From Epithemia pelagica (Eukaryota > Protista > Bacillariophyta), in NCBI GenBank assembly GCA_946965045.2, contig OX337229.1, forward strand, positions 1,550,001-1,614,000: a stretch of DNA of 64,000 nt, in the 5' to 3' direction. The notes under the pieces were generated by a model. The model was given only the letters and a program-made list of their open reading frames with translations, searched no databases and had not been told where the DNA came from. Each line of letters begins with the position of its first letter. Position 1 is the first letter of the stretch. The position numbers and the translations under genes are program-made. Shown one piece after another: positions 12,821 through 64,000 of this stretch.

Positions 12821-14416
12821 ATGACACGTGTGGTTTGTTTTCTTTTGTTCCTTCATATAATAAATGTTCTCTTGTGTCTACCCATGGTTTCGTCGTTGCT
12901 CTCGACGCGGACGAATCTCAATCCGACATGGTTGTCTCAGGGAACAGTCCGTCGGATGACACGACAATTCGCATCGTTGAATATTGCGGTCGTTGGAGGT
13001 GGTGCCAGTGGCATATTTTCGGCCATTGCTGCGGCGGAAAATTTGAATGCAAGGGCGGAGAATAGTGGGGCAGACACGGTTCAAGTTACGGTCCTCGAAG
13101 CGACAAACAACACGCTGAGCAAAGTGAAAATCTCTGGTGGTGGGAGATGCAATGTCTTGCATGATACCAGCAAGCCTGTTGGCGAGATTCTGCAAGGATA
13201 TCCTCGTGGACGAAAGGAACTCATTGGAATATTTCACAAGCGATTCACACCCTCCAATGCACGGCAATGGTTTGAGAGTCGGGGCGTGCAACTCAAGACG
13301 GAAGCCGACGGACGCATGTTTCCAACCTCAGACTCTTCCCAAACAATCATTGACACTCTCCTATCAGCAGCCCAAAAGGCAAATGTACATATTCAATACA
13401 GATTCAAGGTCGAACAAGTGGCGGTCCTGGATCCATCGTCCGAAGTGAATGTTGACTCACAGGAAATACATTCCACAACCAATCACCAATTTTGTGTATC
13501 GACAAAATCTCGACACTCTCAAAATGAGAATTCAGTGTCCAAGAGCACACCAGACATGTATTTTGATGCTGTCATACTGGCAACAGGATCCATGCCTGCT
13601 GGGTATAAAATGGTACAACATTTGAACCATTCCTTTGTTCCGACGGTGCCCTCACTCTTTACTTTGAATTCCCGAGAAGAAATCAATCATGAACATGGTC
13701 TACTGCACGGACTCGCCGGTATATCCGTTCCCTACGCGGAGGTTTCCTTTCGCGTGCCGGGGCAGAAAAAGCCACTGCAAAAAGAAGAGGGACCATTGTT
13801 GATTACCCATCATGGTCTCTCGGGGCCGGCAATTCTACGACTTTCTGCCTTTGGAGCTCGAGAATTGGCCAAAGTCAAGTACCAAGGAATTCTTCGAATC
13901 AATTGGGCTCCTCACTTGGGCACGGTAGAAGATGTAATGGAAGAATTGTGGAAATGTACGTCGTTGCGTCCCAAAAAGCATGTCTCCAATCATTGTCCGC
14001 TCATGTTGCCGGGAGGGGAAACGGAAGGATCCGCTATTCCACGGCGTCTGTGGTCCTCCATGGTACAAAGGGTGGGGTTTAGTGAATCACAAATTTGGGC
14101 TTCGGCCAGCAAAAAGTTGGTTCGGAAACTGGCCATGGACGTTTGTGCCTGTGACATTGAAATATCGGGGAAAAGCACCTACAAGGACGAATTTGTTACT
14201 GCCGGTGGTGTGTCGCTCAAGGAAATTGATATGCAAACGATGCAAAGTAAAAAGTATCCAGGCTTGTTCTTTTGTGGAGAGCTCGTCAATGTGGATGGTG
14301 TCACAGGCGGATACAACTTTTTGAATTGCTGGTCCACGGGCTATATTGCAGGCAACAGTGCCGCGGACTTTATGGTTCAAAAACTGCAACAACAACAGTC
14401 ATTATCCGCTAGTTGA
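12821..14416 (+). CDS. HI0933/YhiN(BaiN)-family FAD/NAD(P)-dependent flavoprotein
   Basis: AVVGGGASG, KVKISGGGRCNV, LKTEADGRMFP, LLITHHGLSGPAIL, FVTAGGV, GLFFCGELVNVDGVTGGYNF. Likely start Met at 12821 precedes a hydrophobic presequence. Confidence 0.93.
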   Translation: MTRVVCFLLFLHIINVLLCLPMVSSLLSTRTNLNPTWLSQGTVRRMTRQFASLNIAVVGGGASGIFSAIAAAENLNARAENSGADTVQVTVLEATNNTLSKVKISGGGRCNVLHDTSKPVGEILQGYPRGRKELIGIFHKRFTPSNARQWFESRGVQLKTEADGRMFPTSDSSQTIIDTLLSAAQKANVHIQYRFKVEQVAVLDPSSEVNVDSQEIHSTTNHQFCVSTKSRHSQNENSVSKSTPDMYFDAVILATGSMPAGYKMVQHLNHSFVPTVPSLFTLNSREEINHEHGLLHGLAGISVPYAEVSFRVPGQKKPLQKEEGPLLITHHGLSGPAILRLSAFGARELAKVKYQGILRINWAPHLGTVEDVMEELWKCTSLRPKKHVSNHCPLMLPGGETEGSAIPRRLWSSMVQRVGFSESQIWASASKKLVRKLAMDVCACDIEISGKSTYKDEFVTAGGVSLKEIDMQTMQSKKYPGLFFCGELVNVDGVTGGYNFLNCWSTGYIAGNSAADFMVQKLQQQQSLSAS

Positions 14417-32692: not shown

Positions 32693-32773
32693 GACTCGTG
32701 ATAAAAAGAGACCTTTCCTTGGACATCAAAAGATTGATTCACGGAGAAAAGAAAGTTGACTACCTAGGTAGGT

Positions 32774-33296
32774 TCGCACAAGGTAGATGACCGTGACTGA
32801 TCGTACGATGAGTCACGATCAATACCTAGTGGTTTCATCTGGCTGTGACGTCATAATATACAAACACCTAGCACATGTAGATCGTAGTTTAGACAATGGG
32901 GAGAAAGGGAATACGATAGGAGGCGCTTTCAATGGCCTTGGACATGAGCTAGACATCATCCATGAACATGTGCGATATCTTGGGACGATTGAATGCGATC
33001 TAGATGTCAGATGCACACGAACCAGCAATGCTGCGTGTAGATTTCTACGTACCTAGTACAAATGGATGGAAAAGGGGGAACAACAACAACGAGCACTAAC
33101 ATAGACGATAACACTCACAATTCTAAAAAGCATCATCATCACATCTCTTTGTGTCCTACCTACTCTTCTAGTAGTTGTTGGCCTTTTCCTTGACCCGTGG
33201 GGGATTGGCTACGTGGTTGGTGCCTTGAATTGTCTAACGCTTTGTTGTATCTTTGATTGTTGTGTCGTAACGACCGGAGTCCTTCATCTTTTGTCA
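32774..33296 (+). repeat. 5' LTR of element 1
   Basis: TCGCACAAGG...CTTTTGTCA; identical by eye to 39970-40492. Confidence 0.96.
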
Positions 33297-33311
33297 GATT
33301 AACAGTCTCAA
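33297..33311 (+). other. Primer-binding site of element 1
   Basis: GATTAACAGTCTCAA directly after the LTR terminal CA; the same 15-mer follows the LTR of element 2. Confidence 0.85.
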
Positions 33312-34368: not shown

Positions 34369-37300
34369 ATGACGGAATCGACTGAGAATGCAGTAGATCT
34401 TTCCCAGGATCCAGTTTTTCAGCACATCTTTACTACGATCTTGAATCAACCCCCAGATCGCCTTACTGATTTCCAAGACTGGTTTACTCATCACAAGTTT
34501 TTAAACTTCTCTGAGTTTCTTGAGTTGTATGTCTTCGAACCTGAAACCCTTGCGGATGACCTTGAATTTAAAACTAAGCGACAGCCTAAGACCCAGAAAT
34601 TACATCCTACCTTCGCTAAGCAAATTCGTGCTTTCCTTCTTTGGGCTAATCATCTTCACTCTCTCGCCCAGCGTTTCTTTGGTGCTGATGACTGGTTAGC
34701 ACTTACTCGCGAGGATTATGGTCGGTTTCGCATCGGGACTTATTTCCCTACTTCTTCTCAGTCTCGGGCCTTAAACGTGCCGTCTACTCCAGGTACTCCA
34801 TCTCTTGGCACTCCGGGGGGGAAGTCTACTATGTCTAACTCGTCTCAGTCCCAGCAAGATTTGACTACCTTTCGTAAAGGCATTAAACGCGACTCAACGG
34901 CATATGAAGTACTCAAGGAAGAGAAAAACTATGACCCCTTTATGCGTAGTTTTCGTGCTACTGCACTTGCTCAAGGATTAGGCAATGTTTTGGATCCTTC
35001 TTTTGTTGTGGATTCCACAGATCCTGCTGCCTCTGCTCTTTACCGAGAACAACAGATCTTTCTATATTCAGTTTTAGTTCGTTGTTTACAAACTGATAAA
35101 GGTCGTGCTATCATTCGTGCCCATACTACGGACATGGATGCTACAGCCGTCCTAGATGAGTTACGCACTCATCATACGGACTCCGAGTTGTCACGCAAGG
35201 AAATCATGCGTCTCACTGCCTATCTTACAAACATTCGTCTTGATTCAGCATGGAGAGGCACTACATCCCAGTTCTTGCTTCATTTCAATGAACAACTACG
35301 TCTTTTAGATAGTCTATGTGATTCTAGCCAAAAGCTACCTGATTTTTCACGTACTACTTTTCTCATGCAAGCTGTGGATGGTAATGAAGATCTTCGACGT
35401 GTCAAGATTTTCGATGATTTTCTTAAATCCCAATCTGGGACTCATGCAAAGATGTCCTATGATGACTACTATCGTGTGTTGACTAATGCTGCTTTTCAAT
35501 TTGATCAGCACTTAGCTAGCAAGAATGGATCTAAACGACGAGCTTATGCTTCCCAACAGTGTGATCACGATATTTTTGACTCTGATCATTCTAGTTCTCA
35601 TGATGATTTCATTCAAGAGGATCTTGTATCTATTTTTCAAGCTAATCGGACTCGTAATCGCATTGATACTCGTACTCAGCGTATTTTTCTCCCTAAGGAT
35701 ATTTGGGATGCTACTTCAGATGAAGTTAAAGAGATGCTAAAAGCACACAATAAACGTATCTTGGCTAACTCACCTAATTCTAAACCTCGTCAAACGAACC
35801 TACATGAGGTTAGTGAATCATCTGCTGATGAAAATCCAACAGCTACTGATAATACTGAAGAAGCTTGTCAAGAAGCTGCTGTTGCTACTGAGTCTGATCC
35901 TAGTCCTGATCAGCTTCTCACAATGTTACATGAGCAAACTGATTATCCTGAATCTGATATTCAGCGCGTCCTTTCTGCCAACAAGGCTAAATCTAAGGGT
36001 GTTAGTTTCTCTATCAATGCTACCTATCGCTTCTCCAAGGCTAACCTTAATCCTACCTTTCAGTTGATTGATAGAGGGGCCAATGGTGGTTTAGCTGGGA
36101 GTGATTTGAAGATTATCCACAAAACTGGTCGAAAGATTAACATTATTGGCATTGATAATCACGAGGTAACTGGTTTGGACATTGTTACCGCTGCAGGTCT
36201 TTATTCTACACAGCTAGGTACAATCGTTGGTATTTTCCATGAGTATGCTTACCTTGGCAAAGGTCGTTCGATTCACTCTCCGCCACAAATGGAATATTTC
36301 AAGACTCTTGTTGATGACAAGTCAGTTCTTGTCGGTGGTCGACAGCGTATTGAGACTCTAGACGGTTATGCCTTACCTTTGATCTTTAAGGGTGGACTTG
36401 TCTATTTGGATAGTCTAGGCATTCCTACTGATAATGACCTAGCTACCTATCCTCATGTCGTCTTTACGTCACCCGATGAATGGAATCCTGACGTCATGGA
36501 TCATTCTCATTCGTCCAATCCTGATACACATTCTGATTGGATGGATCTTGTCAACCCAGACCCTATTGATCGTGATTTTTCTGCGACTGGAGACTATGTT
36601 CATCGCGTCAACCTAGTTTCCCAGATTCTTACCCTTCATCAACAGACAAACCTAGCTGGTGCCGTCGACTTTCAACACAGTCGTTATCATCAACAATCTC
36701 TGAAATCTGAAGATTTTGAAGCCCTACGTCCTTATTTTGCTTGGGCATCGGCTGATAGCATAGCTAATACCTTTAAGGTTTCTACACGCTATGTGGGATT
36801 TTCCCCTCATGATTATCTCAAGAAGCACTTTCGCACTCGTAACCCTGTGCTCAATATCGGTCGTCGTCGTGAAGGGGTTGCCACTGATACAGTCTTTGCT
36901 GATACACCTGCTATTGATAATGGTTCTAAGGCTGCTCAGATTTTTGTTGGAAGAGATACCCTTGTTTGCGATGTGTATGGAGTCAAATCTGATGCTCAAT
37001 TCGTCAATACCCTTGAGGATAATATCCGACTACGGGGAGCTATGGACGTTTTAATCAGTGATCGTGCTCAGGCTTTAGTTTCTAAGAAAGTACAAGACAT
37101 CCTACGGTCTTTGTTTATTTCTCAGTACACATCTGAACCTCATCATCAGCATCAGAATTTTGCTGAAAATCGGTACTCTACTCTTAAGCGCTGGACTAAT
37201 CTTATTCTCAATACCTCTGGTTGTCCACCTAGCTGCTGGTTACTTGCTCTAGACTATGCGTCGACCGTGCTTAACCACCTTGCTTCGCCGGCGCTTAACG

Positions 37301-39996
37301 GTCGCACCCCCATTGAGCGCCTGACGGGCTCCACTCCTGATGTTAGTTTCTTACTTGCTCATTATTTCTGGGAACCAATTTATTTTTCTTATGATCCTGA
37401 TCGATCTTCTTACCCTTCTACTGGTAATGAATCTAAAGGTCGTTGGGTAGGTTTTGGTACTGGAGTTGGGGATCCATTAACATGGAAGATCCTTACTGAT
37501 GAAACCTCTACGATTTTGTTTCGATCTACTATTCGTAGTGCTACCTCTTCTTTACCTAACCGACGTCTAGATCCAGAAAAAGGGGAGATAGTTCATGTCA
37601 GAGGTCGTCATGAAGATAGTTCTTCTGGATCTACACCTCCTATGCCTACTATAGATCCACATGATCTACTTGGCCGTAAATTTCTTGGCCCTAAACTGGA
37701 AACTGGGGAGCGTTTCCGTGGGTTAGTTGTTGCTATGGTCCAAGATCAAGCTTATCGTGACCGAAAACGTTTTGAAGACCTAAGTTTTGAAGTGGAATAT
37801 GATGAAGGTCGCCTTCGTGAGATTGTCACTTACAACGAACTTCTCAATCATCTAGATCATGATCCTGACGACGTTGTTTTCTCTGAGCAAGAGTATCGCA
37901 TGCGGCAAATCACTGCTCATCAAGGTCCTCTCAAACCTACTGATGCTCATTACAAGGGATCTAGCTACAACGTTCTTGTCGAATGGGAAAATGGGGAGAC
38001 TAGCTATGAGCCTCTTTCTTTTATAGCTAGTGATGATCCTTTGCTATGCGCTATCTATGCCAAGAATAATGGACTACTCGACTTAGATGGCTGGAAGCAC
38101 CTAGCTAAATACGTCAAGACTGAAAAACGACTCATCAAGACACTCCGTCGACATTTGCAGCAAGCCAAGAAAAAGATGATCCGGCGTAACTCTCGCGCGC
38201 AAATCAAGTACCGTTTTGGCGTGCAAGTCCCACGGGATTATGATGAAGCTATCCTGCTAGATGTTCAGAACAAGAATAACTTATGGTCAAAAGCAACTGA
38301 ACTCGAGCTAGATCAAGTCATTCATCAATATAAGACATTCCTAGTTCGGGATAAGGCTATTTTTCAAAATGGGAAGCTTATGAATGCTCCTGAAGGATAC
38401 CAACGGTTGAGAGTTCACCTAGTTTTCGATGTCAAACATGATGGACGTCGAAAAGCTAGACTTGTAGCTGATGGGCATTTGACTATACGAGACCCGTCTA
38501 TGTCAAGCTACTCAGGAGTGGTATCAATACGTGGCCTACGTCTAGTTATCTTCCTCAGTGAACTGAACAAGCTGGAGATCTGGGCAGCTGACATTGGAAA
38601 TGCTTACCTAGAAGCACAAACAAAGGAGAAGCTATTCATCATAGCTGGTCCTGAATTTGGAGATTTGGAAGGAAAAATCTTGATTTTTGATAAGGCACTT
38701 TACGGGCTTGTGACCAGTGGAGCACGATGGCATGATAAACTCTACGACGTTTTACAAGAAATGGGATTTAAACCATGCAAGATTGAACCTGACATCTGGT
38801 TTAAGCTAAACGAAGAGCACGGTGTCTACGAGTACATAGCAGTTTACGTAGACGACCTAGCAATTGCTGCAAAGAACCCGAAAGAAATTTGTGATACTTT
38901 CACTGAAAAATTTAAATTCAAACTCAAAGGTGTGGGCCCAATAGCATATCACCTAGGGTGTACATACAAGAGAGAACCAGATGGAACATTGGTTGGGGAC
39001 CCCAGACGATACGTTGAGAAGATACTCGAAGGATACGAAATCTTATTCGGGAACAAACCGAAAAAGTACAAGACTCCATTAGACCGGCAAGATCATCCTG
39101 AACTAGATGATAGCGAGCTATGTGAAGAAAAGGACATTGCCATCTATCAATCCATTATAGGGCAACTGCAATGGGTGGTGACTATAGGTCGTTTTGACAT
39201 CTTCACTTCCGTCATGACTTTGGCTAGATTCCGTGCCGCTCCACGAATTGGCCATTTGGAACGTGCAAAACGAGTTGTTGGATACCTAGCAGGCATGTAT
39301 CATGGAGCAATCCGTTTTAGACTACATGAACCAGACTACTCCAATCTGCCAGACCAAAACTATGACTGGTTCCGCGTTTACGATGGAGCACGAGAGGAAG
39401 TTCCAAAAGATGCACCGGAACCTAAGGGTCTACCCGTTGTTACAACTACCTATGTCGATGCTAACCTAAAGCACGACATGATTACGGGGAGATCAGCATC
39501 TGGGATTCTACACCTAGTCAATGGAACTCCCATGGACTGGTACTCCAAGCGACAGGCAACGGTTGAGACTGCAACCTTTGGCTCTGAATTTGTCTCTGCA
39601 CGGATTGCATGTGATCAAATCATGGAACTACGCATTTTTCTTCGTTACCTAGGAGTACCACTACGAGATTCTAGCTACCTATTCGGAGATAATAAGTCAG
39701 TGGTAACCAATAGTACGGTACCACATTCAATCCTTAGCAAACGCCATCATTTTCTGAGCTACAACCGTGTACGTGAGTGTATGGCATCGAAGGCTATCAA
39801 GTTTTACTGGAAGGATGGCAAGACCAACCCCGCTGACGTGTTGACTAAAAATTGGGATTTTGTCACGGGATGGCCACTCCTTAAACCTCTGCTATTCTGG
39901 CGAGGTGATGTTAGTGCTTTGAACGATAAAATCAATGAACCAAAACAAGACAGACAGACGAAAGGGGAGTCGCACAAGGTAGATGACCGTGACTGA
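34369..39996 (+). CDS. Copia gag-pol polyprotein
   Basis: Protease LIDRGANGG; integrase DTVFAD/ISDRA/AENRY; RT KARLVADG, DIGNAYL, YVDD; RNase H DANL, GSEF, GDN, ADVLTK. The stop codon lies inside the 3' LTR. Confidence 0.97.
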   Translation: MTESTENAVDLSQDPVFQHIFTTILNQPPDRLTDFQDWFTHHKFLNFSEFLELYVFEPETLADDLEFKTKRQPKTQKLHPTFAKQIRAFLLWANHLHSLAQRFFGADDWLALTREDYGRFRIGTYFPTSSQSRALNVPSTPGTPSLGTPGGKSTMSNSSQSQQDLTTFRKGIKRDSTAYEVLKEEKNYDPFMRSFRATALAQGLGNVLDPSFVVDSTDPAASALYREQQIFLYSVLVRCLQTDKGRAIIRAHTTDMDATAVLDELRTHHTDSELSRKEIMRLTAYLTNIRLDSAWRGTTSQFLLHFNEQLRLLDSLCDSSQKLPDFSRTTFLMQAVDGNEDLRRVKIFDDFLKSQSGTHAKMSYDDYYRVLTNAAFQFDQHLASKNGSKRRAYASQQCDHDIFDSDHSSSHDDFIQEDLVSIFQANRTRNRIDTRTQRIFLPKDIWDATSDEVKEMLKAHNKRILANSPNSKPRQTNLHEVSESSADENPTATDNTEEACQEAAVATESDPSPDQLLTMLHEQTDYPESDIQRVLSANKAKSKGVSFSINATYRFSKANLNPTFQLIDRGANGGLAGSDLKIIHKTGRKINIIGIDNHEVTGLDIVTAAGLYSTQLGTIVGIFHEYAYLGKGRSIHSPPQMEYFKTLVDDKSVLVGGRQRIETLDGYALPLIFKGGLVYLDSLGIPTDNDLATYPHVVFTSPDEWNPDVMDHSHSSNPDTHSDWMDLVNPDPIDRDFSATGDYVHRVNLVSQILTLHQQTNLAGAVDFQHSRYHQQSLKSEDFEALRPYFAWASADSIANTFKVSTRYVGFSPHDYLKKHFRTRNPVLNIGRRREGVATDTVFADTPAIDNGSKAAQIFVGRDTLVCDVYGVKSDAQFVNTLEDNIRLRGAMDVLISDRAQALVSKKVQDILRSLFISQYTSEPHHQHQNFAENRYSTLKRWTNLILNTSGCPPSCWLLALDYASTVLNHLASPALNGRTPIERLTGSTPDVSFLLAHYFWEPIYFSYDPDRSSYPSTGNESKGRWVGFGTGVGDPLTWKILTDETSTILFRSTIRSATSSLPNRRLDPEKGEIVHVRGRHEDSSSGSTPPMPTIDPHDLLGRKFLGPKLETGERFRGLVVAMVQDQAYRDRKRFEDLSFEVEYDEGRLREIVTYNELLNHLDHDPDDVVFSEQEYRMRQITAHQGPLKPTDAHYKGSSYNVLVEWENGETSYEPLSFIASDDPLLCAIYAKNNGLLDLDGWKHLAKYVKTEKRLIKTLRRHLQQAKKKMIRRNSRAQIKYRFGVQVPRDYDEAILLDVQNKNNLWSKATELELDQVIHQYKTFLVRDKAIFQNGKLMNAPEGYQRLRVHLVFDVKHDGRRKARLVADGHLTIRDPSMSSYSGVVSIRGLRLVIFLSELNKLEIWAADIGNAYLEAQTKEKLFIIAGPEFGDLEGKILIFDKALYGLVTSGARWHDKLYDVLQEMGFKPCKIEPDIWFKLNEEHGVYEYIAVYVDDLAIAAKNPKEICDTFTEKFKFKLKGVGPIAYHLGCTYKREPDGTLVGDPRRYVEKILEGYEILFGNKPKKYKTPLDRQDHPELDDSELCEEKDIAIYQSIIGQLQWVVTIGRFDIFTSVMTLARFRAAPRIGHLERAKRVVGYLAGMYHGAIRFRLHEPDYSNLPDQNYDWFRVYDGAREEVPKDAPEPKGLPVVTTTYVDANLKHDMITGRSASGILHLVNGTPMDWYSKRQATVETATFGSEFVSARIACDQIMELRIFLRYLGVPLRDSSYLFGDNKSVVTNSTVPHSILSKRHHFLSYNRVRECMASKAIKFYWKDGKTNPADVLTKNWDFVTGWPLLKPLLFWRGDVSALNDKINEPKQDRQTKGESHKVDDRD
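39960..39969 (+). other. Polypurine tract of element 1
   Basis: GAAAGGGGAG abutting the 3' LTR start at 39970. Confidence 0.88.
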
Positions 39997-40492
39997 TCGT
40001 ACGATGAGTCACGATCAATACCTAGTGGTTTCATCTGGCTGTGACGTCATAATATACAAACACCTAGCACATGTAGATCGTAGTTTAGACAATGGGGAGA
40101 AAGGGAATACGATAGGAGGCGCTTTCAATGGCCTTGGACATGAGCTAGACATCATCCATGAACATGTGCGATATCTTGGGACGATTGAATGCGATCTAGA
40201 TGTCAGATGCACACGAACCAGCAATGCTGCGTGTAGATTTCTACGTACCTAGTACAAATGGATGGAAAAGGGGGAACAACAACAACGAGCACTAACATAG
40301 ACGATAACACTCACAATTCTAAAAAGCATCATCATCACATCTCTTTGTGTCCTACCTACTCTTCTAGTAGTTGTTGGCCTTTTCCTTGACCCGTGGGGGA
40401 TTGGCTACGTGGTTGGTGCCTTGAATTGTCTAACGCTTTGTTGTATCTTTGATTGTTGTGTCGTAACGACCGGAGTCCTTCATCTTTTGTCA
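39970..40492 (+). repeat. 3' LTR of element 1
   Basis: 523-bp direct repeat of 32774-33296, followed by TSD TAGGT. Confidence 0.96.
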
Positions 40493-41001
40493 TAGGTTTA
40501 GAGTAACTCCGAATCTCCGATTTCCGAGATTCGGAGGAACTACGAGTATCACACTCCCTTTATTATATATCCTTGAAACGTAATGTTAGTATCATAAAAT
40601 ATATTCATGTTGGACCGTCTGGGATTAGGGACTGCAGTGCTACATGACTGCATCGATATTCGACATCCAGGAATTGATGATGCGAAATGTTAAATAAATC
40701 TAAATTTATTTTTCTATTTTCACACTTATCTATTCAAGCAAGAGAGAGAAGGTTCTCTCATCTGCCTGGAACACCCTGGCAATTGCCGAATCATTAATAA
40801 ATCATGTTGAATAAATTTCGTTACGAGATTCGTAATTTGTAATAGCCAGTAGGCTTATTTTCTTGTACATTTTTTGTACCATTTTTTGACCCATTCCGAT
40901 TTCCGATCACAGGCGAAGGCAAAAAAGTGCCACACACTCGTGCACGATGCCACAAAAACAACTAAGTAATTGCTAGTATTCGAGGCGAGCGGAAAGAACG
41001 A

Positions 41002-50543: not shown

Positions 50544-53500
50544 ATGCCAGCAGGTGTTGGAACAACAGGTCGGTTGGGTCCTGGGTCCAGGGCATTTCTC
50601 AGAGGCAGCAAGGAACCTGTGCTAATTGTCCGAGCCCTTGCGAACAAGTCATGGGAAGTTGAGCGGCTTGACAAGAGGGATGGCAGTAGAACAGGTGAGC
50701 TGATGAACAAGACCTCTTATCAGCTGAAGAAGATACAACGAGGCGATAGCTTTCCTGGGGAATACCGAGTGCAGCAGACAGTGGCAAGAACAACTGCAAC
50801 AACAGCACCAACATCAACAGCAACTACCACCACTGCTGCTTCCAACCAACAGCAACGGCAAGAACAACAGCAAGAAGGCTCGTCAAATGAGGAGGAGGCT
50901 TTGGTTGTTGTTAACAGCTTTGCATCATCTGGTGCAGCCAACAACGAGGGTCCTCAACAAGAAGGAGGGGAGAATCAGACAGGTATTGAAGTTCTTGTTG
51001 CTCGTCAGGGTGGTAGTCAGCAGCAGCAGCGGAATGAGAACCACAACCAGCAACATCAAAGAACACAACAACAAGAACACATTGCCATGACGGCCGAGAA
51101 TACAAGAGATGATGACGAGGGATTTGAAGTTGTGGCATTGAGCAACCGTGAACAGGCTCAGGATGAAGATGAGCAGAACAACAACAACAACAACGGGCAG
51201 GACAGTGCAATGGCAGGCCCGAGCGCCGAACAACGAGAACACACGACACACACAAACAACACTTCGAGCAACACCAGGAGTGAGCCCACCCAAGTCATGG
51301 ATGGGGATGCAGGTGGTGACGGTCAGCGTGGTGGTGATACCGTCCCTGTCGTTCGTACTCGTGAGGACGCGCACAACGTGGTCGAGACAATTCTCAATGA
51401 CGACGACGACCGGAGTTGGATTTCCGACGTTGGAATTGCTGGTCCACCAGCAGTGGAGCAGCAGGAACGTGAAGTCGCGAGGAATGACCAGAACCTTTCT
51501 GGTCGCACTTTCCAACACACAACAGATGAGGATAATGCATCAGCCGTGTCGTTGGATGACTACTTCAACGACTTGGAGGACTATCTGTTTTTGTTTTCGG
51601 ACGACGAGGATGCCATTGATCCTAACAGTTTGGCACTCGCACACGAAATTGAGAGCAGGGAGGAGCACAGGAACAGGTATACAAACTATATAAACAGAAA
51701 GAAGCAACTGATAGAAGAAAACTGGACAGTGACCCTCGAGCCACCCAGCGAAAATGGTATTGATATTGGCGACAGAGTCCGGGAGAACAAAAGGAACAAT
51801 CCACGTTTCGGAATTGTGGTTGAAAAGCATCCGGATAGTATCCCTGGCACTCCTTTGTGGAATGTGCTCTTTGACGGAGACGAGGAAGAGACACTAGCGC
51901 TTACAGGCAGGAATGACCTGCGCAAGATTTATGACAATCGGAGTTTCACTTGGCAAATTGTTGATGGCGATACAGTACCCGACAACCTTGTTGAAGAATT
52001 CGAGAGTGTTGGTGTTGTTGGCTTTGACTTTCGCCAGTCATTTGCTCACAGCAACTTGTCTACAACAAACCAACGCTATGACTTTCCATTCCTGCGTCTG
52101 CTGATCCACATGTGGCCAGGTAAGTCGTTGATTGTCAAGTTTCCTGTTGGTGTCACAGTGAAAAGGGTCTCAGTATTAATGGCGTGTTTGTCTTACAGGG
52201 AGTTGGCGAGAGCAGCTGCATAGGTTGAATGAAGCAATCAACGAACGCAATCAGGGCAGACTCCGAAGCCGCCATATCCGTTGCGTCACAGAGCATGAGT
52301 GGTGGGCATGGTGGGGCATTCTTATCGGAGCGGCACCCTGCCACAAAGGTGGTATTTGGCTCTTCGATGATGCGTCGTCAACTTCACATCGTCAGTTTTC
52401 TCCGAAAGTGAATGCCAGCAAAGGTGGCATGGATCTCATGTCGAAGACTCGGTTCTTCGACATCAAGGAGATTCTTCCCTGTGCCTTTGAAGGGGACAAC
52501 CACGGTGCGAAATGGAACCAGATCAAACCGTTGGTTGACGGTTTCAACAGCAACCGTCGGAAAACAGTTGCCGCCTCATCAACAATTACGTTGGATGAGG
52601 CAATGTGCGCGTTCCAACCACGGACAACGAAGACATCAACACTCCCCCATTTGTCTTACGTCCAACGCAAACCCAAACCATTGGGGACGGAGTTCAAGGT
52701 AATGTTTGCTTTTCCGAACTGACTGCCTTTGCAGGTGACCAACTCATCCGTTTGATTGTCGTTTGTTTTGTTCAAAAAGGTTTCTGGTGACACAGCAACA
52801 GGTTGTCTTCTCTTCCTTGAGATACAGGAAGGGAAGATCCCAATGCGGCGCAAGAAGTTTATGGCAGATGGAGGCATGACGGTAGGAACGTCGCTTCGAT
52901 TGGTGGAAGGCTCGGAATATTCTGGCCAGTCAGTGCTTGAGCGTGTTGAAGCTCAGAGCCAAGGAAGCACAAGGCCCCTTGTATGTGCAGATTCTTGGTT
53001 TGGCAGCGTCAAGCTTGTCGAAGCCATGAAGTGCATGTACCGTGAACCACGAGAGCCGACAGCTCGTGATCGTCGGACCTACACTCTGTGTGTAGACAAA
53101 GTGCGGGGGAACAACCAGGATGCGCCCGAAGTCATTTGTTCCATCAAAACCAACAATGGCTTGTTCCCCCAAGAAGAATTGAAAAAGGAGATGGAACCCT
53201 TTCCATCGGGATCGTATCTTGTGATGGAGAGCGTGGCACCAGGTACCAACGTCAACCTGGTTGCCATCGCATACAAATACAATTCACGCAAGACTCTCTT
53301 TTTCGCCATGTCAAGAGATGCGGAGACTACGGAGCCTGGCCTCCCCTACGTGGCCAGGTTCGCTGATGAACATGGCAACGTCAGAGAGCGCCGCGTCCTA
53401 CGGCCGAAATGTTTGTCTGTGTATTTTGGAGCGGCCAATCTCATTGATGTCCACAATCACCTTCGACAGGGTGTGTTGCGGCTTGAAATGCTGTGGAAAA

Positions 53501-54291
53501 CGCCAAACCCATGGTTTAGGCTTATCACCACGATAATCGGTATCACGGTGGTTGATTGTTTTTTGGCGACCAAGTACCATTTGGGTGGCAGGCAGTCTCC
53601 AGTCTCGTCGGGAGTGGAGTATTTTGCAGATTGTTTGGCATGGGATCTTTCCCACAACCAGTTAAACAACAACCTTGACCGTCGAGGTCAGGCCCGCCCC
53701 AATATTGCTTCAAATGTCGTTGAAGCTGAGGATGGTACTGCTGGACTTCAGCAAAGGTCGCTGACAGAACAGGCCACACAATTCGCAAAGCAGATGCTGG
53801 AGGAGGCGTTTATGGCTCAGTTCGGGGCCTCAACTGCTAGTGCTCCTGGTTTGAGCCGATGTCCTCCGATTTCAGTTGTTGATTTACAATCCACACAGCA
53901 CCCCATCATTTCCCCAACGGAGTCATTGACGGTTCAGGATGATGATGCCACGGCGTGTATTCCTTGCGACTCTGGAGTTCCACCATCTGGAGTCTTTTCT
54001 CACAAGCCCATCCCAAATCCCGAACGAGTCCAGGGTGCGGATGGCAAGATACGTCCAAGCGCACGTCGATGCGTCATCTGTCGCATGAAGACGAGAGCAC
54101 TTTGCGGACATCCTGCTTGTCTTGCAAAAACGAAGACCCGCAAGGTACCAGGAACGGACGAGACCAAGACCCTCAAAGGTATTGGACTATGCAACGATAA
54201 CAAGATTCGTTCTGGGATGACCCGCACCTGTGTTGAAGAGCACAGATTCCAAATGGAGATCCTCCGAATGCAACAACAGAACACAGCTTGA
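50544..54291 (+). mobile_element. piggyBac-like (DDE_Tnp_1_7) transposase gene, 3 exons (~1195 aa)
   Basis: Exons 50544-52119, 52199-52698 and 52780-54291 join in frame. ITLDEAM, RKPKPLGTEFK, ADSWFGSV, IDVHNHLRQ, WFRLITT and C-terminal Cys-rich domain (RRCVIC...CGHPAC...LC...C). TIRs not identified. Confidence 0.85.
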
Positions 54292-54415
54292 TTTCACGAC
54301 GATTGCTCTATGATTTAGTATGAAAATGAAAATACACAATACATGATTAGGTAAGACCAATACATAGTTCTATTTGAAGTTACATCCATACAGTTCGAAC
54401 TAGTGCACGTATATC

Positions 54416-55003
54416 CTACATAGGAGTAGTCAGTTTCTTGATCACAATATTGGCAGTCTTGTCATCGTCTTTTCCCTCAACAGATTTGCATACTAGCTTC
54501 TCGTTGAGAAGTTTCAGAAACGTCGTGGCTCCAACGACACTCATCTTAACCGTGACAACCATGGGCTCCATTGTCATCACGGTGTTAAGTGAGTGTGTCG
54601 TAGCAATCACGATCTTGCTCTTGACAACTTTGCCACTACTTGACTGAAGAATCGTCGTATCAAGTTGATTGTTGATATATTGCAGTGGGATGACGAGCTC
54701 TGGGACAGAATCATCCTTTTTGGTGCGGTCAAAGAAGCGAATTGAGACTGCATTCGTGTTGACTCGAGACAAATAAGTTCGCTGCAACAGCAACACACCA
54801 CGATCAACAATCAACCGACCATCAGCAGAACATTCTCCGGCACTCTTCAGGTACACATTCACCCCCGCTTCTCCAAACACTGTCACTGTCTCCCCCTTTG
54901 TTTCAAGCGACTGACCACCATCACAAACCACTGTGAACCCATTGACGAGTTTCATCGTCTCAAACCTCTTGCTTCCTTTCGTTGAATTCATCTTTCTGGA
55001 CAA
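54416..55003 (-). CDS. Orphan beta-rich protein convergent with the transposase
   Basis: Uninterrupted 195-aa ORF, V/T/K-rich; no recognised family. Confidence 0.55.
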   Translation of the reverse strand: MSRKMNSTKGSKRFETMKLVNGFTVVCDGGQSLETKGETVTVFGEAGVNVYLKSAGECSADGRLIVDRGVLLLQRTYLSRVNTNAVSIRFFDRTKKDDSVPELVIPLQYINNQLDTTILQSSSGKVVKSKIVIATTHSLNTVMTMEPMVVTVKMSVVGATTFLKLLNEKLVCKSVEGKDDDKTANIVIKKLTTPM

Positions 55004-55380
55004 AGTGATGCAACAAGTGTGAGTGCTTGTTGGGGAGACAGTTCTAACAGCATTGTTTACTTACTTGCCGTCGTGCCGTCTTTCCACCAAAGAACTACTG
55101 TGTCTGTCGATCGGTGCAGCACTACTCCAGAACTTGTTGTTCTTGTTTGCTTTAGTTCTAGTATGTGTGTTTGTTTTGAGATTTGTGAGTGCGGGCATGG
55201 ACGAGTTTTTCGCGCCTCATGGCGCACTTCTTAATTAAGGAAAATTTGTTGGCTGGCGTGACGCGTGACATTTGGTCCGTTCGGAACCTATTCCAACCGA
55301 CACGACCCACATCGGCCTCATATTTTCCGTGGATCTCCTGTTACAGGAACAACAACACCACAAAAGAGAAGAAGACCACC

Positions 55381-55941
55381 ATGTCGACAAGCCCCAATAT
55401 TGCTTCCAATGTCGTCGACGCTGAGTCGCCTACAGAACAGGCCATGCGATACGCGAAGAAGATGCCGGAGGAGGCTGTTATGGCTCAATTCGGGGCCTCA
55501 ACTGCTGGTGCTGGCTTGAGCAGATGCCCTCTGATTTCAGTTGTTGATTCGCTCCCCAGTGTTTCCCCAGCAGAGTCATTGACAGTTCAGGATGATGGTA
55601 CTGTGTCGTGTCTTCTTTGCCACTCTGGAGATCCACCAGCTGGATTCTTGTCTCACTTGTCTCACAGGCCCATGCCAAATCCCGAACAAGTCCAGGATGC
55701 GGATGGCAACGAACAACCACGCACACGTCGATGCGTCATCTGTTTTATGAAGACGAGAGCAATTTGCGCACATCCTGTTTGTCTTGCTAAAACGAAGACC
55801 CGCAAGGTACCGGGAACGGACGAGATCATCAAGACCATCAAAGGTATTGGACTATGCAACGGTAACAGGATTCGTCCTGGGATGAACCGCACCTGTGTTG
55901 AAGAGCACAGATTCCGAATGCAACAACAGAACACAGCTTGA
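55381..55941 (+). CDS. Stand-alone copy of the transposase C-terminal Cys-rich domain (186 aa)
   Basis: 55391 to ~56052 is a diverged direct repeat of 53696 to ~54402, including the 3' UTR. It has its own ATG (ACC ATG), an open frame and all Cys/His conserved. Confidence 0.7.
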   Translation: MSTSPNIASNVVDAESPTEQAMRYAKKMPEEAVMAQFGASTAGAGLSRCPLISVVDSLPSVSPAESLTVQDDGTVSCLLCHSGDPPAGFLSHLSHRPMPNPEQVQDADGNEQPRTRRCVICFMKTRAICAHPVCLAKTKTRKVPGTDEIIKTIKGIGLCNGNRIRPGMNRTCVEEHRFRMQQQNTA

Positions 55942-56970
55942 TTTCACGACGATTGCTCTATGATTTAGTATGAAAATGAAACTACACAATACATGATTAG
56001 GTAAGACCAATACATAGTTCTATTTGAAGTTACATCCATACAGTTCGAACTACAAGTATATCTACATAGTCAATTTCTTGATTGTCATATTGAAATTGAC
56101 ATAGGCAAAAAGGTGGCCCACCAAAGTAATACCAAGAGTGTCGCCAAGTCAAACGATCAAGGGGTCGTCCAGCAAGTTCCGTCCTATTCCACCACACGGG
56201 CATGAATGAAGACGAACGCAATATACTCTTTGAAAAATTCTCGATGTGTTGGCGCAAAAATATTTTCAAGAAAATCAGGATACCAAGCAAATGATATTGG
56301 CTGCCGAATTGGCGCTTGTCTCCTCCTCCAACAAGGCACCACAACCACAACAACAAGCACCACAACCGACACAACGACGTCCAAGTCACCAAGAAGCACC
56401 ACAGCCGCAACAACGACCACGACAACATCAACGACAAGAGTCGTTTGATGACACCACAGCCGTCTTGTCTGCGGCAAGAAGTGCCACAGAAACCCATCAA
56501 GAACTGTTAGAATTCTCACCGTCTATGGTGGTTAGATTCTACATCTCATCGATTCCCCATGTCACATAGCCTCGTGCTATCGCATCATGCCATCTAGCTT
56601 CGAGCTATGTTCCCTAGCTTCGCGCTATATCGACCTATATTTCTTCGCAAATCATGAAAAGTGAGAATAGATTGACGAACTCACTCTCAAGACTAAACTG
56701 GGTCGTGCGGTATTACAACGGACGTAAATTTGGCCGTTGCTCGGACATTATACTAACGCCCTAAGCGTACGCGCCCGAAATCATCGAGCGCGCCCAAGCG
56801 ACATCCGAGCGCTGTCGGCATCTATCCGACCCAACGGTCTAAGTATCCCAAGCACGACACACGATCACGCGAGACCATATTTCCATTCCCACAATCTCCA
56901 AATTGTCAACAAGCTGCGCGCCATGAAAACAACTATGCCAACCCAAAGCAAGAGCTGTTGACCCTGTATA

Positions 56971-57287
56971 TGTTATCCGTCCACATATACATGTCATATA
57001 CATCACATGAATCGACTCCAACTATTCCAAACCTGTTGCCGCCAAGAACCTATGACACATGACCCTTGGCAGGACCGAACATTTCACGTAGACCTATCGT
57101 AGTAATCAACACACAATCTAACAATATCACCATTTATCACATCTTCTTTTGTGTCCCGACTATCCTTCTGATAGACTTCGACTTGCTTGCTTCTCTGACC
57201 CTGAGAAGCTTGTATCGGTTGGTGACCTACCTGATTGTCTGCTCTACCGAGCATCAATGCCTCTGCAATTCCAAGAGAATTGTAACA
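56971..57287 (+). repeat. Putative 5' LTR of element 2 (~317 bp)
   Basis: Right end fixed by CA followed by the PBS; left end inferred from the 5-bp inverted match TGTTA/TAACA. Confidence 0.55.
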
Positions 57288-57302
57288 GATTAACAGTCTC
57301 AA
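57288..57302 (+). other. Primer-binding site of element 2
   Basis: GATTAACAGTCTCAA, identical to 33297-33311. Confidence 0.85.
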
Positions 57303-57323: not shown

Positions 57324-58103
57324 ATGGATACTAACGAGCTTATCACTCCTGTACGACAGATCTATCGAGCCAACCTGCATCCCGGGCAGCCCGATACCCT
57401 GGTGCAGCAGGAACTGGTGCCGACGCCGAAGGCAGCCAACACATCGGTCAACATCTCCGTCGACAGTTCCAACAGCAACCCATTCGAGACTCCAACCCAG
57501 CCTCACGCTCCGATCCCTGCGCCGTTGCTTCGGCCCCCGAGTCCGCCTCGTCGGCTCGTCCCTTCTCGATCCCGTCGTACCACCCGGTTGATTGCTGATC
57601 ATATCAAGTACTTCTGTCAACCAACTTGTTCGACCTTCGATCCCGAGATCATCCGTGGGGAGACCCAGATCGAACGCCAGTTCCAATCGGTGACCCACAT
57701 CGTCGACCAAGAAGACATTGACCGTCTGAACGACCAACTTCATCGTTCTCCGAGGCGTCGCCTCATCTTGACCGCCCTCTCGGGCAACCCCATCCGTACT
57801 GTCCACCTCCGCTTCCTAACCTTCGAGCGCCCAACTGGATACTACAATACCATCTACGTCGTGAACGCGACGACTTGCCCTCTGCCTCCTAACGTTGTAC
57901 GCCTAGATAACTACGTTGCCTACATCCACGAGGTCCATACCATCGAGGACCATCGTGCAACTATCTTCCCTTTGCGTACCGAGGTCGAGAACCACTTGGC
58001 TGAAGGTGATACCCCTTCTTCTGTTGCTTGTGCTGCCCCATCTGAGCCTGGAAACGACTCTGATTATTCGGAAGAGAGTGGGGATTTGGAGACCGAAGCT
58101 TAA
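57324..58103 (+). CDS. Extra ORF upstream of gag in element 2 (259 aa, unknown function)
   Basis: Sense-strand open frame starting 21 nt after the PBS; Pro-rich linker, hydrophobic core, acidic tail. Confidence 0.62.
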   Translation: MDTNELITPVRQIYRANLHPGQPDTLVQQELVPTPKAANTSVNISVDSSNSNPFETPTQPHAPIPAPLLRPPSPPRRLVPSRSRRTTRLIADHIKYFCQPTCSTFDPEIIRGETQIERQFQSVTHIVDQEDIDRLNDQLHRSPRRRLILTALSGNPIRTVHLRFLTFERPTGYYNTIYVVNATTCPLPPNVVRLDNYVAYIHEVHTIEDHRATIFPLRTEVENHLAEGDTPSSVACAAPSEPGNDSDYSEESGDLETEA

Positions 58104-58423
58104 TTACTCATAGTTAACTCCCGTCCTCTCAAAACCTTTCCAAGACTTAAACTCAACGCACATCCGGGTACCCTTGGTCGCACAACACGCCACACATTCC
58201 CGTCCAATCGCGAAAATTCGGCGAAAATTTGTTGAAACTCGGCGAAAATTTGTCGGAATCAATGGAAATTTCCAGGAGTCGCACATCACAACACACATCC
58301 GGGTATCACATACGTGGTACATACGTGGCACACGTGGTACATCCGGGTTCACATCACATCACACATTAAATAAACCACATCACACCGCACATTAAATAAA
58401 CATCGAACCAACCAAATAACACC

Positions 58424-61400
58424 ATGGATCCTCAATCACCCAAGGCACCTACGACTCCTAAGGGAGAAGATAACCAAGACAATGTCTCGAACACAGACCT
58501 ATTCGACCACATCATATTTACTGTCTGCCAATTCTTTACCAAAGAAAGGGCCGATTACTTAATGAAGTGGATGAAATACCATGGTTTTGAGAACATTACC
58601 CATGTTATCTCGTATATGCAAACTAATACCGAGGAATCCATGAACGAACTGACCCAATACAAGGTCAACAAACAGACACATGATCTACAAGGCCCCACAA
58701 GACAGCAGATCAAGCTCTTGGCTTATTGGGCCATATACAAGACCAACGAAATTCAAGACGAGCTATCCAATAGCGACTGGATGAACCTAACGAGGAAAGA
58801 GTTCAACACTTGGAGGATCAACACAGATTTCTCTAAGGGACCACCTAGCCAAGTTCCAGTCTCGCCAATGAAGTCACCGTCATCTGTGAAATCTGTCAGC
58901 ACAGTTACTGCCGCATCCCAATCTCAACAAGACCTTACAGCATTCAGAAAGGGAACTAAGCGCGACGCAACTGCATATGAGGTATTCAAGGATGAACGAT
59001 ACTACGATTCATTCTGGCGTGTATTCAAGACTACAGCTAAGGCTCAAGGCCTATCCAACGTTCTGAATTTCAAATACACACCACCCCATGATGATGAGTA
59101 TGCCGAAGAACTTTTTCAAGAGCAACAAGTATTTCTTTACTCCGTTCTTGTCCGTATCATTCAGACTGACCAAGGTCGAGCCTATGTACGTGAACATGAA
59201 CATGATGAAGATGCGCGTGCTGTATTGCAGAAATTACACTCTTTGCATACCGAATCCGACCTAGCAAAACGAGAAGTCCTCCGTTTAACCAACTACATTT
59301 CCAATCTACGTCTTGACGACACATGGCGCGGAACAACACGTCAATTTCTTCTACACTTTCAAGAGCAGCTACGTTTGCTAGACAATCTAGTGACATTGTC
59401 TGATCGCATCCCTGATCATACCAGGATGACCTTCCTCATGCAAGCTGTAGAAAAGGTACCTGATCTCCGCCGAGTCAAGATCTTGGATAATGTGGTGAAC
59501 ACCAAATCCGGTGCAAAATCCCTTTGCTATCAATCATACTTCCGTCTCCTTCTAGACGCAGCTTATGACCATGATCAAGCAACCCAGTCATCTGTTCATA
59601 GTCGCCGTTGACATGTCAAACAACATGAATCACTATATGGCCAAGATACAGATGCTGACATAACCTCACAAGATGATATGGAGTATCATGTCCACAACAC
59701 CAAAGCGACATCTGAATCTTCATCCTCTTCGTCCAAGGTTAGTCTACCGCGTGACCTATGGTTCAAACTTTCTGAAGAAGATCGCAAGTTGATCATTGAG
59801 TATAACAAGATGATTCAAGCACCTTCATCAACAACACCGAGGAAAGTGCAAACACATGCCCTCGACATTGATCCGGAACCTGATCCTGACCCCAACCAAG
59901 TTGCATCTGATGACGACTCACCTGACGTAGTCCCTGAGCATCCAGATGATTCAGATCCGGTTACACAATTTATCAACCAAGCCATGACGACTGATATCAA
60001 TCACCCGGCAACTGACCTGACTAGTGTTCTTTCTAACGCCAAGTCCAAGACAAGCAAGAAGGTTACTTTCAAAGCCAACATGCATAAACAAGCAGGACAT
60101 GTTCCACGCTATTTGTTTTCCAGGAAATCTACTTTACCAGGAAATCAATTGATTGACCGTGGTGCTAATGGAGGACTTGCTGGTTCTGACATGCGCATCC
60201 TTTCTAAGACTGGCCGCCATATCACTATTGTGGGTATTGATAACCATGAACTTACTGGACTTCCTGTCGTCACATGTGCCGCAAAGTTTGAGACCAATGA
60301 TGGACCTATTGTCGGCATCTTCAATGAATATGCTTATTATGGAAAGGGCTTATCTATCCATGCTCCTGGTCAATTCGAGCATTTCGGACTTGCTGTTGAT
60401 GAACGATCTGTTAAAGTTGATGGTAAACAACGCATCACTACACTTGATGGTCGTGCTATACCCCTTCACATCAAGGATGGGTTAGCCTACATCCACTCCT
60501 TGGGTATCCCCAGCGACGATGACATGAATACCTTACCTCAGATCATCTTCACGTCACCCGACACATGGGATCCTGGTGTTCTGGACCATTCGTATTCTCC
60601 CACATCCTCTGACAATGATCCTGATTGGAAACACGTCAAGACTGATGGTAGTATGTCAAACCATCCATATGACAACTATGGGGAGTACACTGATCGTGTT
60701 GTTTGTAACCTCAATCTCCTTTTGGATCTCCCATACGATCATGGACCTGACGACGCACCCTTCTTTTCTATCTATGCTGACGCAGAAGGTAATGATCCTA
60801 CACTTCATGCCTCTGTCCACCGTCGTTACCAGGAAGCGTATGACTGGAAGAAGTTCCGTCCATTCTTTGGTTGGCAATCTGAAGATGTTATTGCCGATAC
60901 GTTCAAGCACACTACACGTAATGGTAGCATTACTTTTGACCACGACACCCTCAAGAAACATTTCAAGGCTCGCAATCCGGTCCTTAATATACCTCGACGT
61001 CATGAACCCGTTGCTACTGACTCGGTTTTCTCCGACACCCCTGCTGTTGACCATGGCGGTAAAGTCGCACAAATCTTTGTTGGTCGAGATACTCTGGTTA
61101 CTGATATCTATGGGATCAAGTCAACCAAACAGTTTGTCAATACTCTTCAGGACAACATCCGGTTTCGTGGTGCCATGGAGACTCTTATCAGTGATGGTGG
61201 TTCATCTCTCATCTCTCAAAAGGTCAAAGACATTCTTCGCACTTTGCTTATTGGGGAGTATCGATCCGAACCTTATCATCAACACCAGAATAAGGCTGAA
61301 AACCGTTACCAGACCGTCAAACGTATGACCAACGCTCTCATGAATGCCACTGGTTGCCCTGCCAACACCTGGCTTCTTTGCCTTAAGTATGTCTGTGACT

Positions 61401-64000
61401 TATTGAACCATACATCATCACCCACCCATTCCGGTCGCACTCCTCTTGAGGCTCTCTCCGGACGCCCACCCGACATAACTCATCTCTTGTTCTTTCCTTT
61501 CTGGGATGAGGTTTACTACCGTGTCGACCCCGCTGAACCCAATTCCGGTTCATATCCATCTTCTTCTGATGAGAAACTTGGCCACTGGGTTGGTTTTGCT
61601 CACAACGTTGGTGATTCTTTTACTTGGAAGATTCTCACCCAGGATAACCAGATAATCTACCGTTCTGCCGTTCGCCGTGTTGAATCCACTACACCTAACC
61701 TACGTGTGGATTGACCTTCAGGGGAGGATTCGTCTGAGAAGGATGACAATGATAAGCAAGCTGACACCGTCTTCATTTGCAGTGATAGTGAAGATCCATC
61801 CAAACCAATGCCCACGATTGATTTTGACGACATGATAGGACGCACATTCCTATGCGACACAGAAGAAAATGGGGAGCGACACCGTGCACGTGTCATCAAA
61901 CGAGTCATTGATCTTAATGAAGAAGCAACGAAACAGGAAGAACGTGTCAAGTATATCTACCGAAAGACAAATTCTGATGTTGATGAGATGATATCCTATA
62001 ATCAACTCATGGAGTATATCGAACGAGATAACCAAGCTCAAACCTCTGGAGATAATCTTTTCAGGTTCAGGGACGTCATTGCCCATCAAGGCCCACTGAA
62101 CACAACTGATCCAGATTACAAGGGGAGCAAATATAATTTGCTTGTCGATTGGGAAACTGGGGAGACTACCTATGAACCTTTATCACTCATCGCCAATGAT
62201 GATCCGATCACTGTAGCAATTTATGGAAAGAAACATGGTTTACTCAACGAACCTGGATGGAAGCATTTGAAACGTTATGTCAAAACAAGCAAACGTCTCA
62301 TTCGAGCAGCCAAACAGTCAAGGATTAAACAAGTTCACCATTCCGTCAAGTATAAGTTTGGATTCTAAGTACCACGCAATTATGAGGAAGCTGTCGCTCT
62401 TGATAAACAACATGGCAACACAAAGTGGCAGGATGCAACAGAATTAGAATTGTCACAGATCCAGTCCTACAAGACATTCAAGGATTTTGGGAAAGCCATC
62501 TTCATTAAAGGGAAAGTATCCAATGCACCTGAAGGATATCATAAGATACGTGTACATCTTGTCTTTGACGTAAAACATGATGGACGACATAAAGCAAGAC
62601 TTGTCGCAGATGGACATCTCACAAAAGAACCTGTTGAGACAATCTATTCAGGTGTTGTTTCCATTCGCAACCTCCGCATTGCCTTATTCCTGGGTACTTT
62701 GAATGACTTGGAAATATGGGGAGCAGATATTGGAAACGCATACCTGGAAGCCTTGACAGGGGAGAAAATTTTCATTGTCGCAGGACCTGAATTCAAGGAA
62801 TTAGAAGGTCACATCCTGATTATATACAAGGCACTTTATGGATTGAAGTCATAAGGCGCACGCTGGCATGATGTCTTATTTGATGTTTTGACAGACATGG
62901 GATTTTCACCAAGCAAAGCAGATCCGGATATCTGGATGAGGAAAGCACCTGGAGAAGACTGTTACGAATACATTGCCGTATACGTTGATGACTTAGCCAT
63001 TATTTCTACTGATCCTGGGAATATCTGCAAGATCCTGAAGGAGAAATACAACTTCAAACTCAAAGGAGATGGACCTATTGATTTCCACTTGGGATGTTGT
63101 TACACCAAGGATTCTGATGGAACATTAGTAGCAGATCCAAGACGCTACATTGGTAAGATGATGGACACTTTCGAACGAATCTTCAAGGAGAAACCCAAGA
63201 AAGCCAAAACACCTCTTATTGGTGGAGACCATCCTGAATTGGATGATTCTGAGCTGCTTGATGAAGAAGGTACTAGCCATTTCCAAACTCTGATTGGACA
63301 ACTCCAATGGGTGATCACTATTGGTCGTTTCGACGTCTTCACCGCTACAATGACGCTATCACGCTTTCGTGCTGCTCCGAGGAAAGGACATCTTGATAGA
63401 GCCAAGCGTATCTATGGATACCTTGCACATCTCCCAGAAGGCGCAATCAGATTTAGGATTGGAGAGCCTGATTATTCAAGTCTTCCTACCCAAGAATTTG
63501 ATTGGACTCGCACTGTCTATTCAAATGCAAGTGAACGTATTCCTGAAGACTGCCCAACACCTCTTGGCCGCTATGTTACCACAACTCATTATGTTGATGC
63601 CAATCTCATGCATGACATAGTCACTGGTAAATCCGTCACTGCTGTTCTACATTTGTTGAACGGAACACCTATTGACTGGTACAGCAAGAGACAGAGCACG
63701 GTGGAAACTGCTACCTATGGATCCAAGTTTGTGGCTGCAAGGACAGCAATAGATCAGATTACAGAATTACGACATTCTCTCCGCTACCTTGGAGTACCTA
63801 TCCGAGAGCGAAGTTACATGTACGGAGATAACAGATCTGTTGTGCTCAATGCAACCGTTCCTCATTCCATACTATCCAAGAGACACCATCTTCTGTCATA
63901 CCACCGAGTTCGTGAAGCCATCGCAGCAAAGTATGTTGCATTCTACTGGAAAGATGGAAAGACCAACCCTGCCGATATCCTTAGCAAACATTGGGATTTT
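58424..64000 (+). pseudogene. Copia gag-pol with four in-frame stops and no frameshifts
   Basis: One reading frame throughout, with stops at 59609, 61712, 62366 and 62852. Motifs LIDRGANGG, DSVFSD, AENRY, KARLVADG, YVDD, DANL and ADILSK. Confidence 0.93.

Follow-up and report, generated by a model that had tools for sequence, protein, structure and literature searches.

A 14-nt sequence, GATTAACAGTCTCA, is probably the minus-strand primer-binding site (PBS) of a clade of diatom Ty1/copia retrotransposons, and its complementarity to a host tRNA points to a 5′ fragment of the nuclear tRNA-Asn(GUU) as the primer. From the precedents of copia and Ty5 we infer the cleavage of this tRNA, its annealing and its priming. 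A probable primer is identified here for a large, young and abundant diatom Copia clade, with ~290 PBS sites in 60 Mb, many of which adjoin identical or near-identical LTRs. The use of a half tRNA-Asn by a large autonomous diatom Copia clade appears to be unreported in the literature searched.

The window is the whole stretch of DNA that was analyzed, 64 kb from the genome of the diatom Epithemia pelagica. In this window the 15-mer GATTAACAGTCTCAA is found exactly at 33297-33311 and 57288-57302, in both cases on the + strand, and no further match is present at up to two mismatches. None of 100 shuffled windows contained two matches. Each copy directly follows, with no intervening base, the 5′ LTR of a complete Ty1/copia element. 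The first of these, element 1, has the following features:

32769..32773, unstranded: target site duplication (TSD) TAGGT, 5′ copy, 5 bp identical to its mate at 40493-40497
32774..33296, + strand: 5′ LTR, 523 bp, ending in ...TTGTCA, 100% identical to 39970-40492
33297..33310, + strand: putative PBS, 14 nt, GATTAACAGTCTCA, fully complementary to positions 27-40 of host tRNA-Asn(GUU); base 33311 (A) lies outside
34369..39996, + strand: gag-PR-INT-RT-RH polyprotein ORF, 1875 aa, uninterrupted, with RVT_2 (E 3e-26)
39960..39969, + strand: polypurine tract GAAAGGGGAG, directly 5′ of the 3′ LTR
39970..40492, + strand: 3′ LTR, 523 bp, identical to the 5′ LTR
40493..40497, unstranded: TSD TAGGT, 3′ copy, flanking the LTR pair

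The RVT_2 domain of element 1 spans residues 1337-1558 of the ORF. An integrase-like region lies upstream of the RT at about residues 800-1000, as judged by homology to a piece of element 2 that has a weak rve match. Element 2 extends beyond the end of the window and is composed as follows:

56500..56504, unstranded: TSD AGAAC, 5′ copy, with its mate after the 3′ LTR, outside the window
56505..57287, + strand: 5′ LTR, 783 bp, TGTTA...TAACA (TG..CA ends), the LTR pair being 99.87% identical
57288..57301, + strand: putative PBS, the same 14-mer GATTAACAGTCTCA; base 57302 (A) lies outside
57324..64000, + strand: internal region, gag followed by PR-INT-RT-RH, with RVT_2 in 62369-63997
G000:C2:1614106-1614888, just past the window end: 3′ LTR, 783 bp, with one mismatch to the 5′ LTR

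The pol frame of element 2 continues to extended coordinate 64105, beyond the window, and the polypurine tract GTGGGGAG lies directly 5′ of the 3′ LTR. Four in-frame stops (at 59609, 61712, 62366 and 62852) interrupt pol despite LTRs that differ at 1 of 783 positions, which suggests that element 2 arose from an already defective template or was mobilized in trans. Both elements are assigned to Ty1/copia on the basis of direct LTRs with a 5-bp TSD (TAGGT and AGAAC, respectively), an RVT_2 domain, an integrase upstream of the RT and a polypurine tract.

The polyproteins of elements 1 and 2 share 47% amino acid identity in PR-INT and 65% in RT-RH, which makes the two elements divergent representatives of a single Copia lineage rather than unrelated. 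The nearest protein-atlas clusters consist of RVT_2 proteins from diatoms (Bacillariophyta), and full-length relatives, ~60% identical in RT-RH, number hundreds on large ENA assemblies. The original prediction had described the LTRs of the two elements as unrelated, and this is not wholly so given the 47-65% polyprotein identity and the diverged U5 blocks that both LTRs contain. Semi-conserved U5 blocks (…ATCACATC…TGTGTCC…, TCTCTGACCCGTGGAG, TATCGGTTGGTGA and GATTGTC) are found in most families that carry the tRNA-Asn-type PBS. In the window they occupy 33137-33250 and 57136-57240, and the LTRs are otherwise unalignable.

The anticodon arm first predicted for the host tRNA, TGAGACTGTTAATCTCA (…TCTCA), has no match in the 60.5-Mb assembly, because the real stem contains a G28-U42 wobble pair (…TCTTA). 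A search of the assembly with a relaxed stem returned six sites, two of which lie within Rfam tRNA matches (RF00005 scored 63 of 1840 tRNA candidates). Both of the latter are called tRNA-Asn with anticodon GTT by ARAGORN. The two genes are identical, 73 nt long and nuclear, on large contigs C1 and C3:

L032:1474-1546, - strand: tRNA-Asn(GTT) gene
L034:1470-1542, - strand: tRNA-Asn(GTT) gene

As the genes are called as plain 73-nt tRNAs, no intron is shown. Their anticodon arm is TGAGA-CTGTTAA-TCTTA, and positions 27-40 are complementary to the PBS 14-mer at 14 of 14 positions. No other tRNA gene with this arm is found in the assembly, organellar contigs included. The expectation that a host tRNA would carry a complementary arm was thus borne out in substance by two nuclear tRNA-Asn(GUU) genes, and the concern that the host might have no tRNA with such an arm is answered by the exact complementarity of positions 27-40. 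The literal TGAGACTGTTAATCTCA was wrong, as was the T predicted at position 26, which is a G.

The conserved, tRNA-complementary block is the 14-mer GATTAACAGTCTCA, at 33297-33310 and 57288-57301. Since the complement to the tRNA ends at position 27, and the 15th base lies mismatched opposite G26 of the host tRNA-Asn, the PBS comprises 14 bp and not 15. The original prediction of a 15-mer directly after the LTR in two Copia elements therefore stands with respect to position, while its length must be reduced: 14 nt are conserved, and base 15 varies across the genome. The D-stem of this tRNA-Asn contains the pairs G10-C25 and C11-G24, and its variable loop is 5 nt long. The combination of these two pairs with a 5-nt variable loop favors m2,2G at position 26. 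The sharp limit at 14 nt may reflect an RT-blocking m2,2G26 of tRNA-Asn.

In the 60.5-Mb genome the 14-mer has 292 exact occurrences (~0.45 expected by chance), two of them being the tRNA genes, and a control with the reversed pattern gave no match in the genome. The base following the 14-mer is A at 155 sites and T, C or G at 137. At all 58 of the non-tRNA sites that were sampled, an LTR or LTR-like sequence terminates directly before the 14-mer, its end being …CA, …TA, …GA or, once, …AC. Judged by their context, the sampled sites come from 11 or more families, whose LTR ends and leaders are unrelated to one another. Base 15 varies within families as well, with A or T in one and A or C in another. 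In a 274-nt alignment of 11 families with 43% mean column identity, the 14 PBS bases are the only invariant columns. Allowing one mismatch raises the number of sites to 311, of which 292 (94%) are thus perfect. The conservation across the family that had been called for is consequently present, the PBS being kept in at least 11 families and, in addition, in other assemblies and metagenomes.

Three further ideas about these sites were considered and rejected. The sites give no sign of a sister PBS type that differs at a single position (for example, a Lys-CUU-like type), there being 19 one-mismatch sites versus 292 exact ones. The A at base 15 is not a mimic of the A44 that pairs with G26, as base 15 varies freely. 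Locus L050 is not a recombinant joined at the PBS; it represents a separate family, whose identity to family I is ~92% on either side.

Related elements outside this genome have the same arrangement. In five elements from other assemblies, for which the LTR pairs were verified, the PBS likewise starts right after the 5′ LTR. ERZ21939226 contains an element of a family also found in the E. pelagica genome, with the canonical PBS behind a 760-bp LTR. ERZ25042306 contains one family in four copies, in which the LTR end …TGTATCA is followed by three forms of the PBS:

L074:2187: canonical PBS
L069:2326 and L073:2329: PBS with an additional A
L070:2327: PBS with an additional C

The extra base sits between the complements of G34 and U33, and this variant is absent from the E. 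pelagica genome. The LTR pairs of the copies with the extra base are 100% (L070), 98.0% (L073) and 95.4% (L069) identical, which implies either that a perfect 14-bp duplex is not strictly needed or that the tRNA of that host differs. No tRNA genes were found in the loci of relatives from other assemblies. The +A copy L073 is 96.7% identical to the canonical L074 versus 91.8% to the other +A copy, L069, so that the extra base was gained or lost on more than one occasion. This base could have been left by the copying of a modified wobble base, or it could be a bulge that is tolerated.

A scan of metagenomes yielded 80 loci, mostly chance 16-mer matches in unrelated, bacterial-looking contigs, some of them from gut. 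Six metagenome contigs contain the PBS together with a Copia pol that shares 46-56% identity with element 1. In five of the six (L099, L119, L136, L144 and L147), pol is followed by an interval of ~160-530 bp and then by the PBS; in L099 this interval is an LTR of ~294 bp preceded by a polypurine tract. The order looks like that expected when an assembler collapses two LTRs, but the same succession of pol, LTR and PBS would result from 1-LTR circles or from tandem elements with an LTR in common. In the remaining contig, L103, the PBS lies upstream of the RT. About 10 further short metagenome contigs have LTR-like ends, …TGTCA or …TATCA, before the PBS.

In the proposed mechanism, tRNA-Asn(GUU) would be cut in the anticodon stem by a nuclease, and positions 27-40 of the resulting fragment would anneal to the PBS in the element RNA. 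The RT would then extend from nucleotide 40 into U5 and R, producing minus-strand strong-stop DNA. Plus-strand strong-stop DNA would later copy the same 14 primer bases, and the PBS would be regenerated. The 3′-OH of the primer would belong to the 3′ strand of the anticodon stem and would be that of C40, or possibly that of U41, as the LTR-terminal A could pair with U41. Two modifications expected in the paired stretch, t6A37 and possibly queuosine-34, might weaken the pairing between PBS and tRNA. For copia and Ty5, too, modification of the initiator tRNA raises this difficulty. Hemiviruses prime from the 3′-OH of nucleotide 40 (PMC1181622; Kikuchi 1986 and Ke 1999, cited through PMC10886601), and complementarity here ends at this same nucleotide, so that the register is that of copia and Ty5, as the original prediction had proposed. 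Other PBS arrangements were also sought: in the leaders of 10 families, complementarity to tRNA positions 1-26, as in a bipartite PBS, is at chance level, and a conventional PBS for the 3′ end of tRNA-Asn has no match in the genome.

Under this mechanism the PBS would be re-templated in each cycle from a modified tRNA-Asn, and its variation could record the modification state of the tRNA, the 14-nt limit corresponding to m2,2G26 and the extra A or C to the footprint of a hypermodified wobble base such as queuosine. If the fragment ending at position 40 were regulated (for example, by stress), cleavage of tRNA-Asn would gate retrotransposition of the whole diatom Copia clade. We regard this extended proposal as speculative and rather unlikely. 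Diatoms make tRNA fragments, and nothing specific to tRNA-Asn has been reported among them (PMC4247016). The link to nitrogen stress that had been suggested for such fragments finds no support in these data.

Complementarity by itself is no proof of a 3′-OH at position 40, and the 14-mer could instead bind the anticodon arm of the intact tRNA-Asn, or act as a decoy, in packaging, dimerization or translational control, with a different primer being used. In the runs that contain the sequence, which consist of assembled contigs and none of which is recorded as RNA, neither a tRNA-Asn 5′ half nor a strong-stop cDNA end or tRNA-cDNA junction was seen. Such a different role is improbable given that the block is located exactly at the place of a PBS and adjoins the LTR end in every family. 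No other conserved candidate PBS lies alongside it, the flanks being 43% identical, and the elements have neither a self-complement nor a PBS of the tRNA-Asn 3′-end type. Moreover, the complementarity ends at the proven priming nucleotide of hemiviruses (PMC1181622).

It is more doubtful still, to the point of being very improbable, that the match to tRNA-Asn is coincidental and that the 14-mer is a conserved cis element or the PBS for another small RNA. RF00005 scored 63 of the 1840 host tRNA candidates, which leaves some room for such a partner. However, the probability that a given 14-mer matches some window of ~50 distinct tRNAs is estimated at p ~1e-5, the match falls in the one arm and register known for copia-type priming, and the same pattern is found with other tRNAs in fungal and plant Copia elements (PMC6317226, PMC5445492, PMC10886601).

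Self-priming as in Tf1, in which the 5′ end of the element transcript pairs with the PBS and is then released by cleavage as the primer, is scarcely credible here: RNAalifold does pair the semi-conserved U5 block GATTGT with the PBS core ACAGTC over 6 bp, but this pairing is weak (-1.1 kcal/mol, G-U pairs included) and without covariation, the window has no reverse-complement copy of the PBS at up to two mismatches, the longest complement between PBS region and LTR in element 1 is 5 nt versus 6-7 nt in shuffled LTRs, and the sole 8-mer complement of element 2 falls outside the PBS. Pairing of the PBS with the RNA 5′ end of its own element, which had been raised as the contrary outcome, is accordingly not seen, as no PBS-LTR complement exceeds chance.

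The proposed priming by a tRNA-Asn fragment has its closest parallels in the hemivirus-type elements (copia, 1731, Ty5 and Volvox Osser). In these the PBS likewise adjoins the 5′ LTR and complements the anticodon stem-loop, not the 3′ end, of the tRNA; the nucleotide-40 register, the PR-INT-RT-RH order and the 5-bp TSDs are also common to both, and the likeness is one of priming mode. Hemivirus-type elements use the 5′ half of initiator tRNA-Met, whereas the candidate primer here is the elongator tRNA-Asn(GUU), the host is a diatom, and the priming is proposed from sequence.

Half-tRNA priming is an established though infrequent mode, and precedents for the use of other tRNAs exist in fungi and plants. 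Rust-fungus Copia and Helenus elements make use of the anticodon loops of tRNA-Tyr, -Ile, -Asp and -iMet (Kojima 2024, PMC10886601), and a single adoption of tRNA-Asn-GTT as primer, in fungal Helenus, is reported in the same paper, as judged purely by complementarity (PMC10886601). The PBS described here is similar in matching an anticodon loop and, in that one Helenus case, the same tRNA (PMC10886601). However, the Helenus case is a single lineage of small, non-autonomous fungal elements, and several of the tRNAs there have introns, whereas the elements here, from a stramenopile alga, form a large clade of autonomous 7-8 kb Copia that comprises at least 11 families, with ~290 sites. Plant Bianca uses a half tRNA-Ile, and Osser, Bryco and Gymco-II use a half tRNA-Met (PMC6317226), while fungal FunCo1 uses an internal region of tRNA-Lys with the PBS ATTAAGAGTCT (PMC5445492). 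Bianca and FunCo1 resemble the elements here in being Copia with a PBS for an elongator tRNA that is matched in its anticodon arm, and the FunCo1 PBS essentially differs from GATTAACAGTCTCA at the base opposite anticodon position 34. The tRNA and the host kingdoms are different in these cases, and the 14-nt extent (positions 27-40) is set here from many families. Plant TAR and fission-yeast Tf1 also have non-canonical priming, but their PBS pairs with their own LTR, a pairing that elements 1 and 2 lack.

In view of these published cases, which include tRNA-Asn-GTT (PMC6317226, PMC5445492, PMC10886601), the statement in the original prediction that half-molecule priming with an elongator tRNA was undescribed was too strong. 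A more general rule, that all half-tRNA primers read ANN codons and hence carry t6A37, was considered and is ruled out by the published use of tRNA-Tyr and tRNA-Asp (PMC10886601). The founding paper on the diatom CoDi elements (Maumus 2009) makes no mention of a PBS or a tRNA.

If the proposed primer is correct, half-tRNA priming with an elongator tRNA reaches the stramenopiles, besides the plant and fungal cases. Such a stramenopile case would strengthen the idea that priming from an anticodon arm is both ancient and flexible in the Copia superfamily. There are also practical implications, in that LTR annotation pipelines seeking only PBSs for tRNA 3′ ends will miss or discard such elements, and the inclusion of the anticodon-arm 14-mer as an added search pattern would improve the annotation of diatom repeats. 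The proposal predicts a tRNA-Asn 5′ fragment of ~40 nt wherever element cDNA is being made, in cells or in particles.

Several other features of the window and assembly are recorded here. The region 53757-56052 of the window contains direct repeats of 88-173 nt that are 85-99% identical and have a constant spacing of ~1.65-1.67 kb. The regular spacing points to a coding segment, overlapping the ORFs at 52756-54291 and 55189-55941, that has been duplicated in tandem. At 14045-14142 of the window, ARAGORN calls a tRNA-Thr(AGT) of 98 nt, which is above standard tRNA length, and this gene may contain an intron. Finally, in the assembly, G000:C13:405346-419018, on the nuclear-size contig C13, and the small contig C22 share a set of identically scoring tRNA matches, as do C14/C15 and C23, a pattern suggestive of organelle DNA that was integrated into nuclear contigs or assembled together with them.
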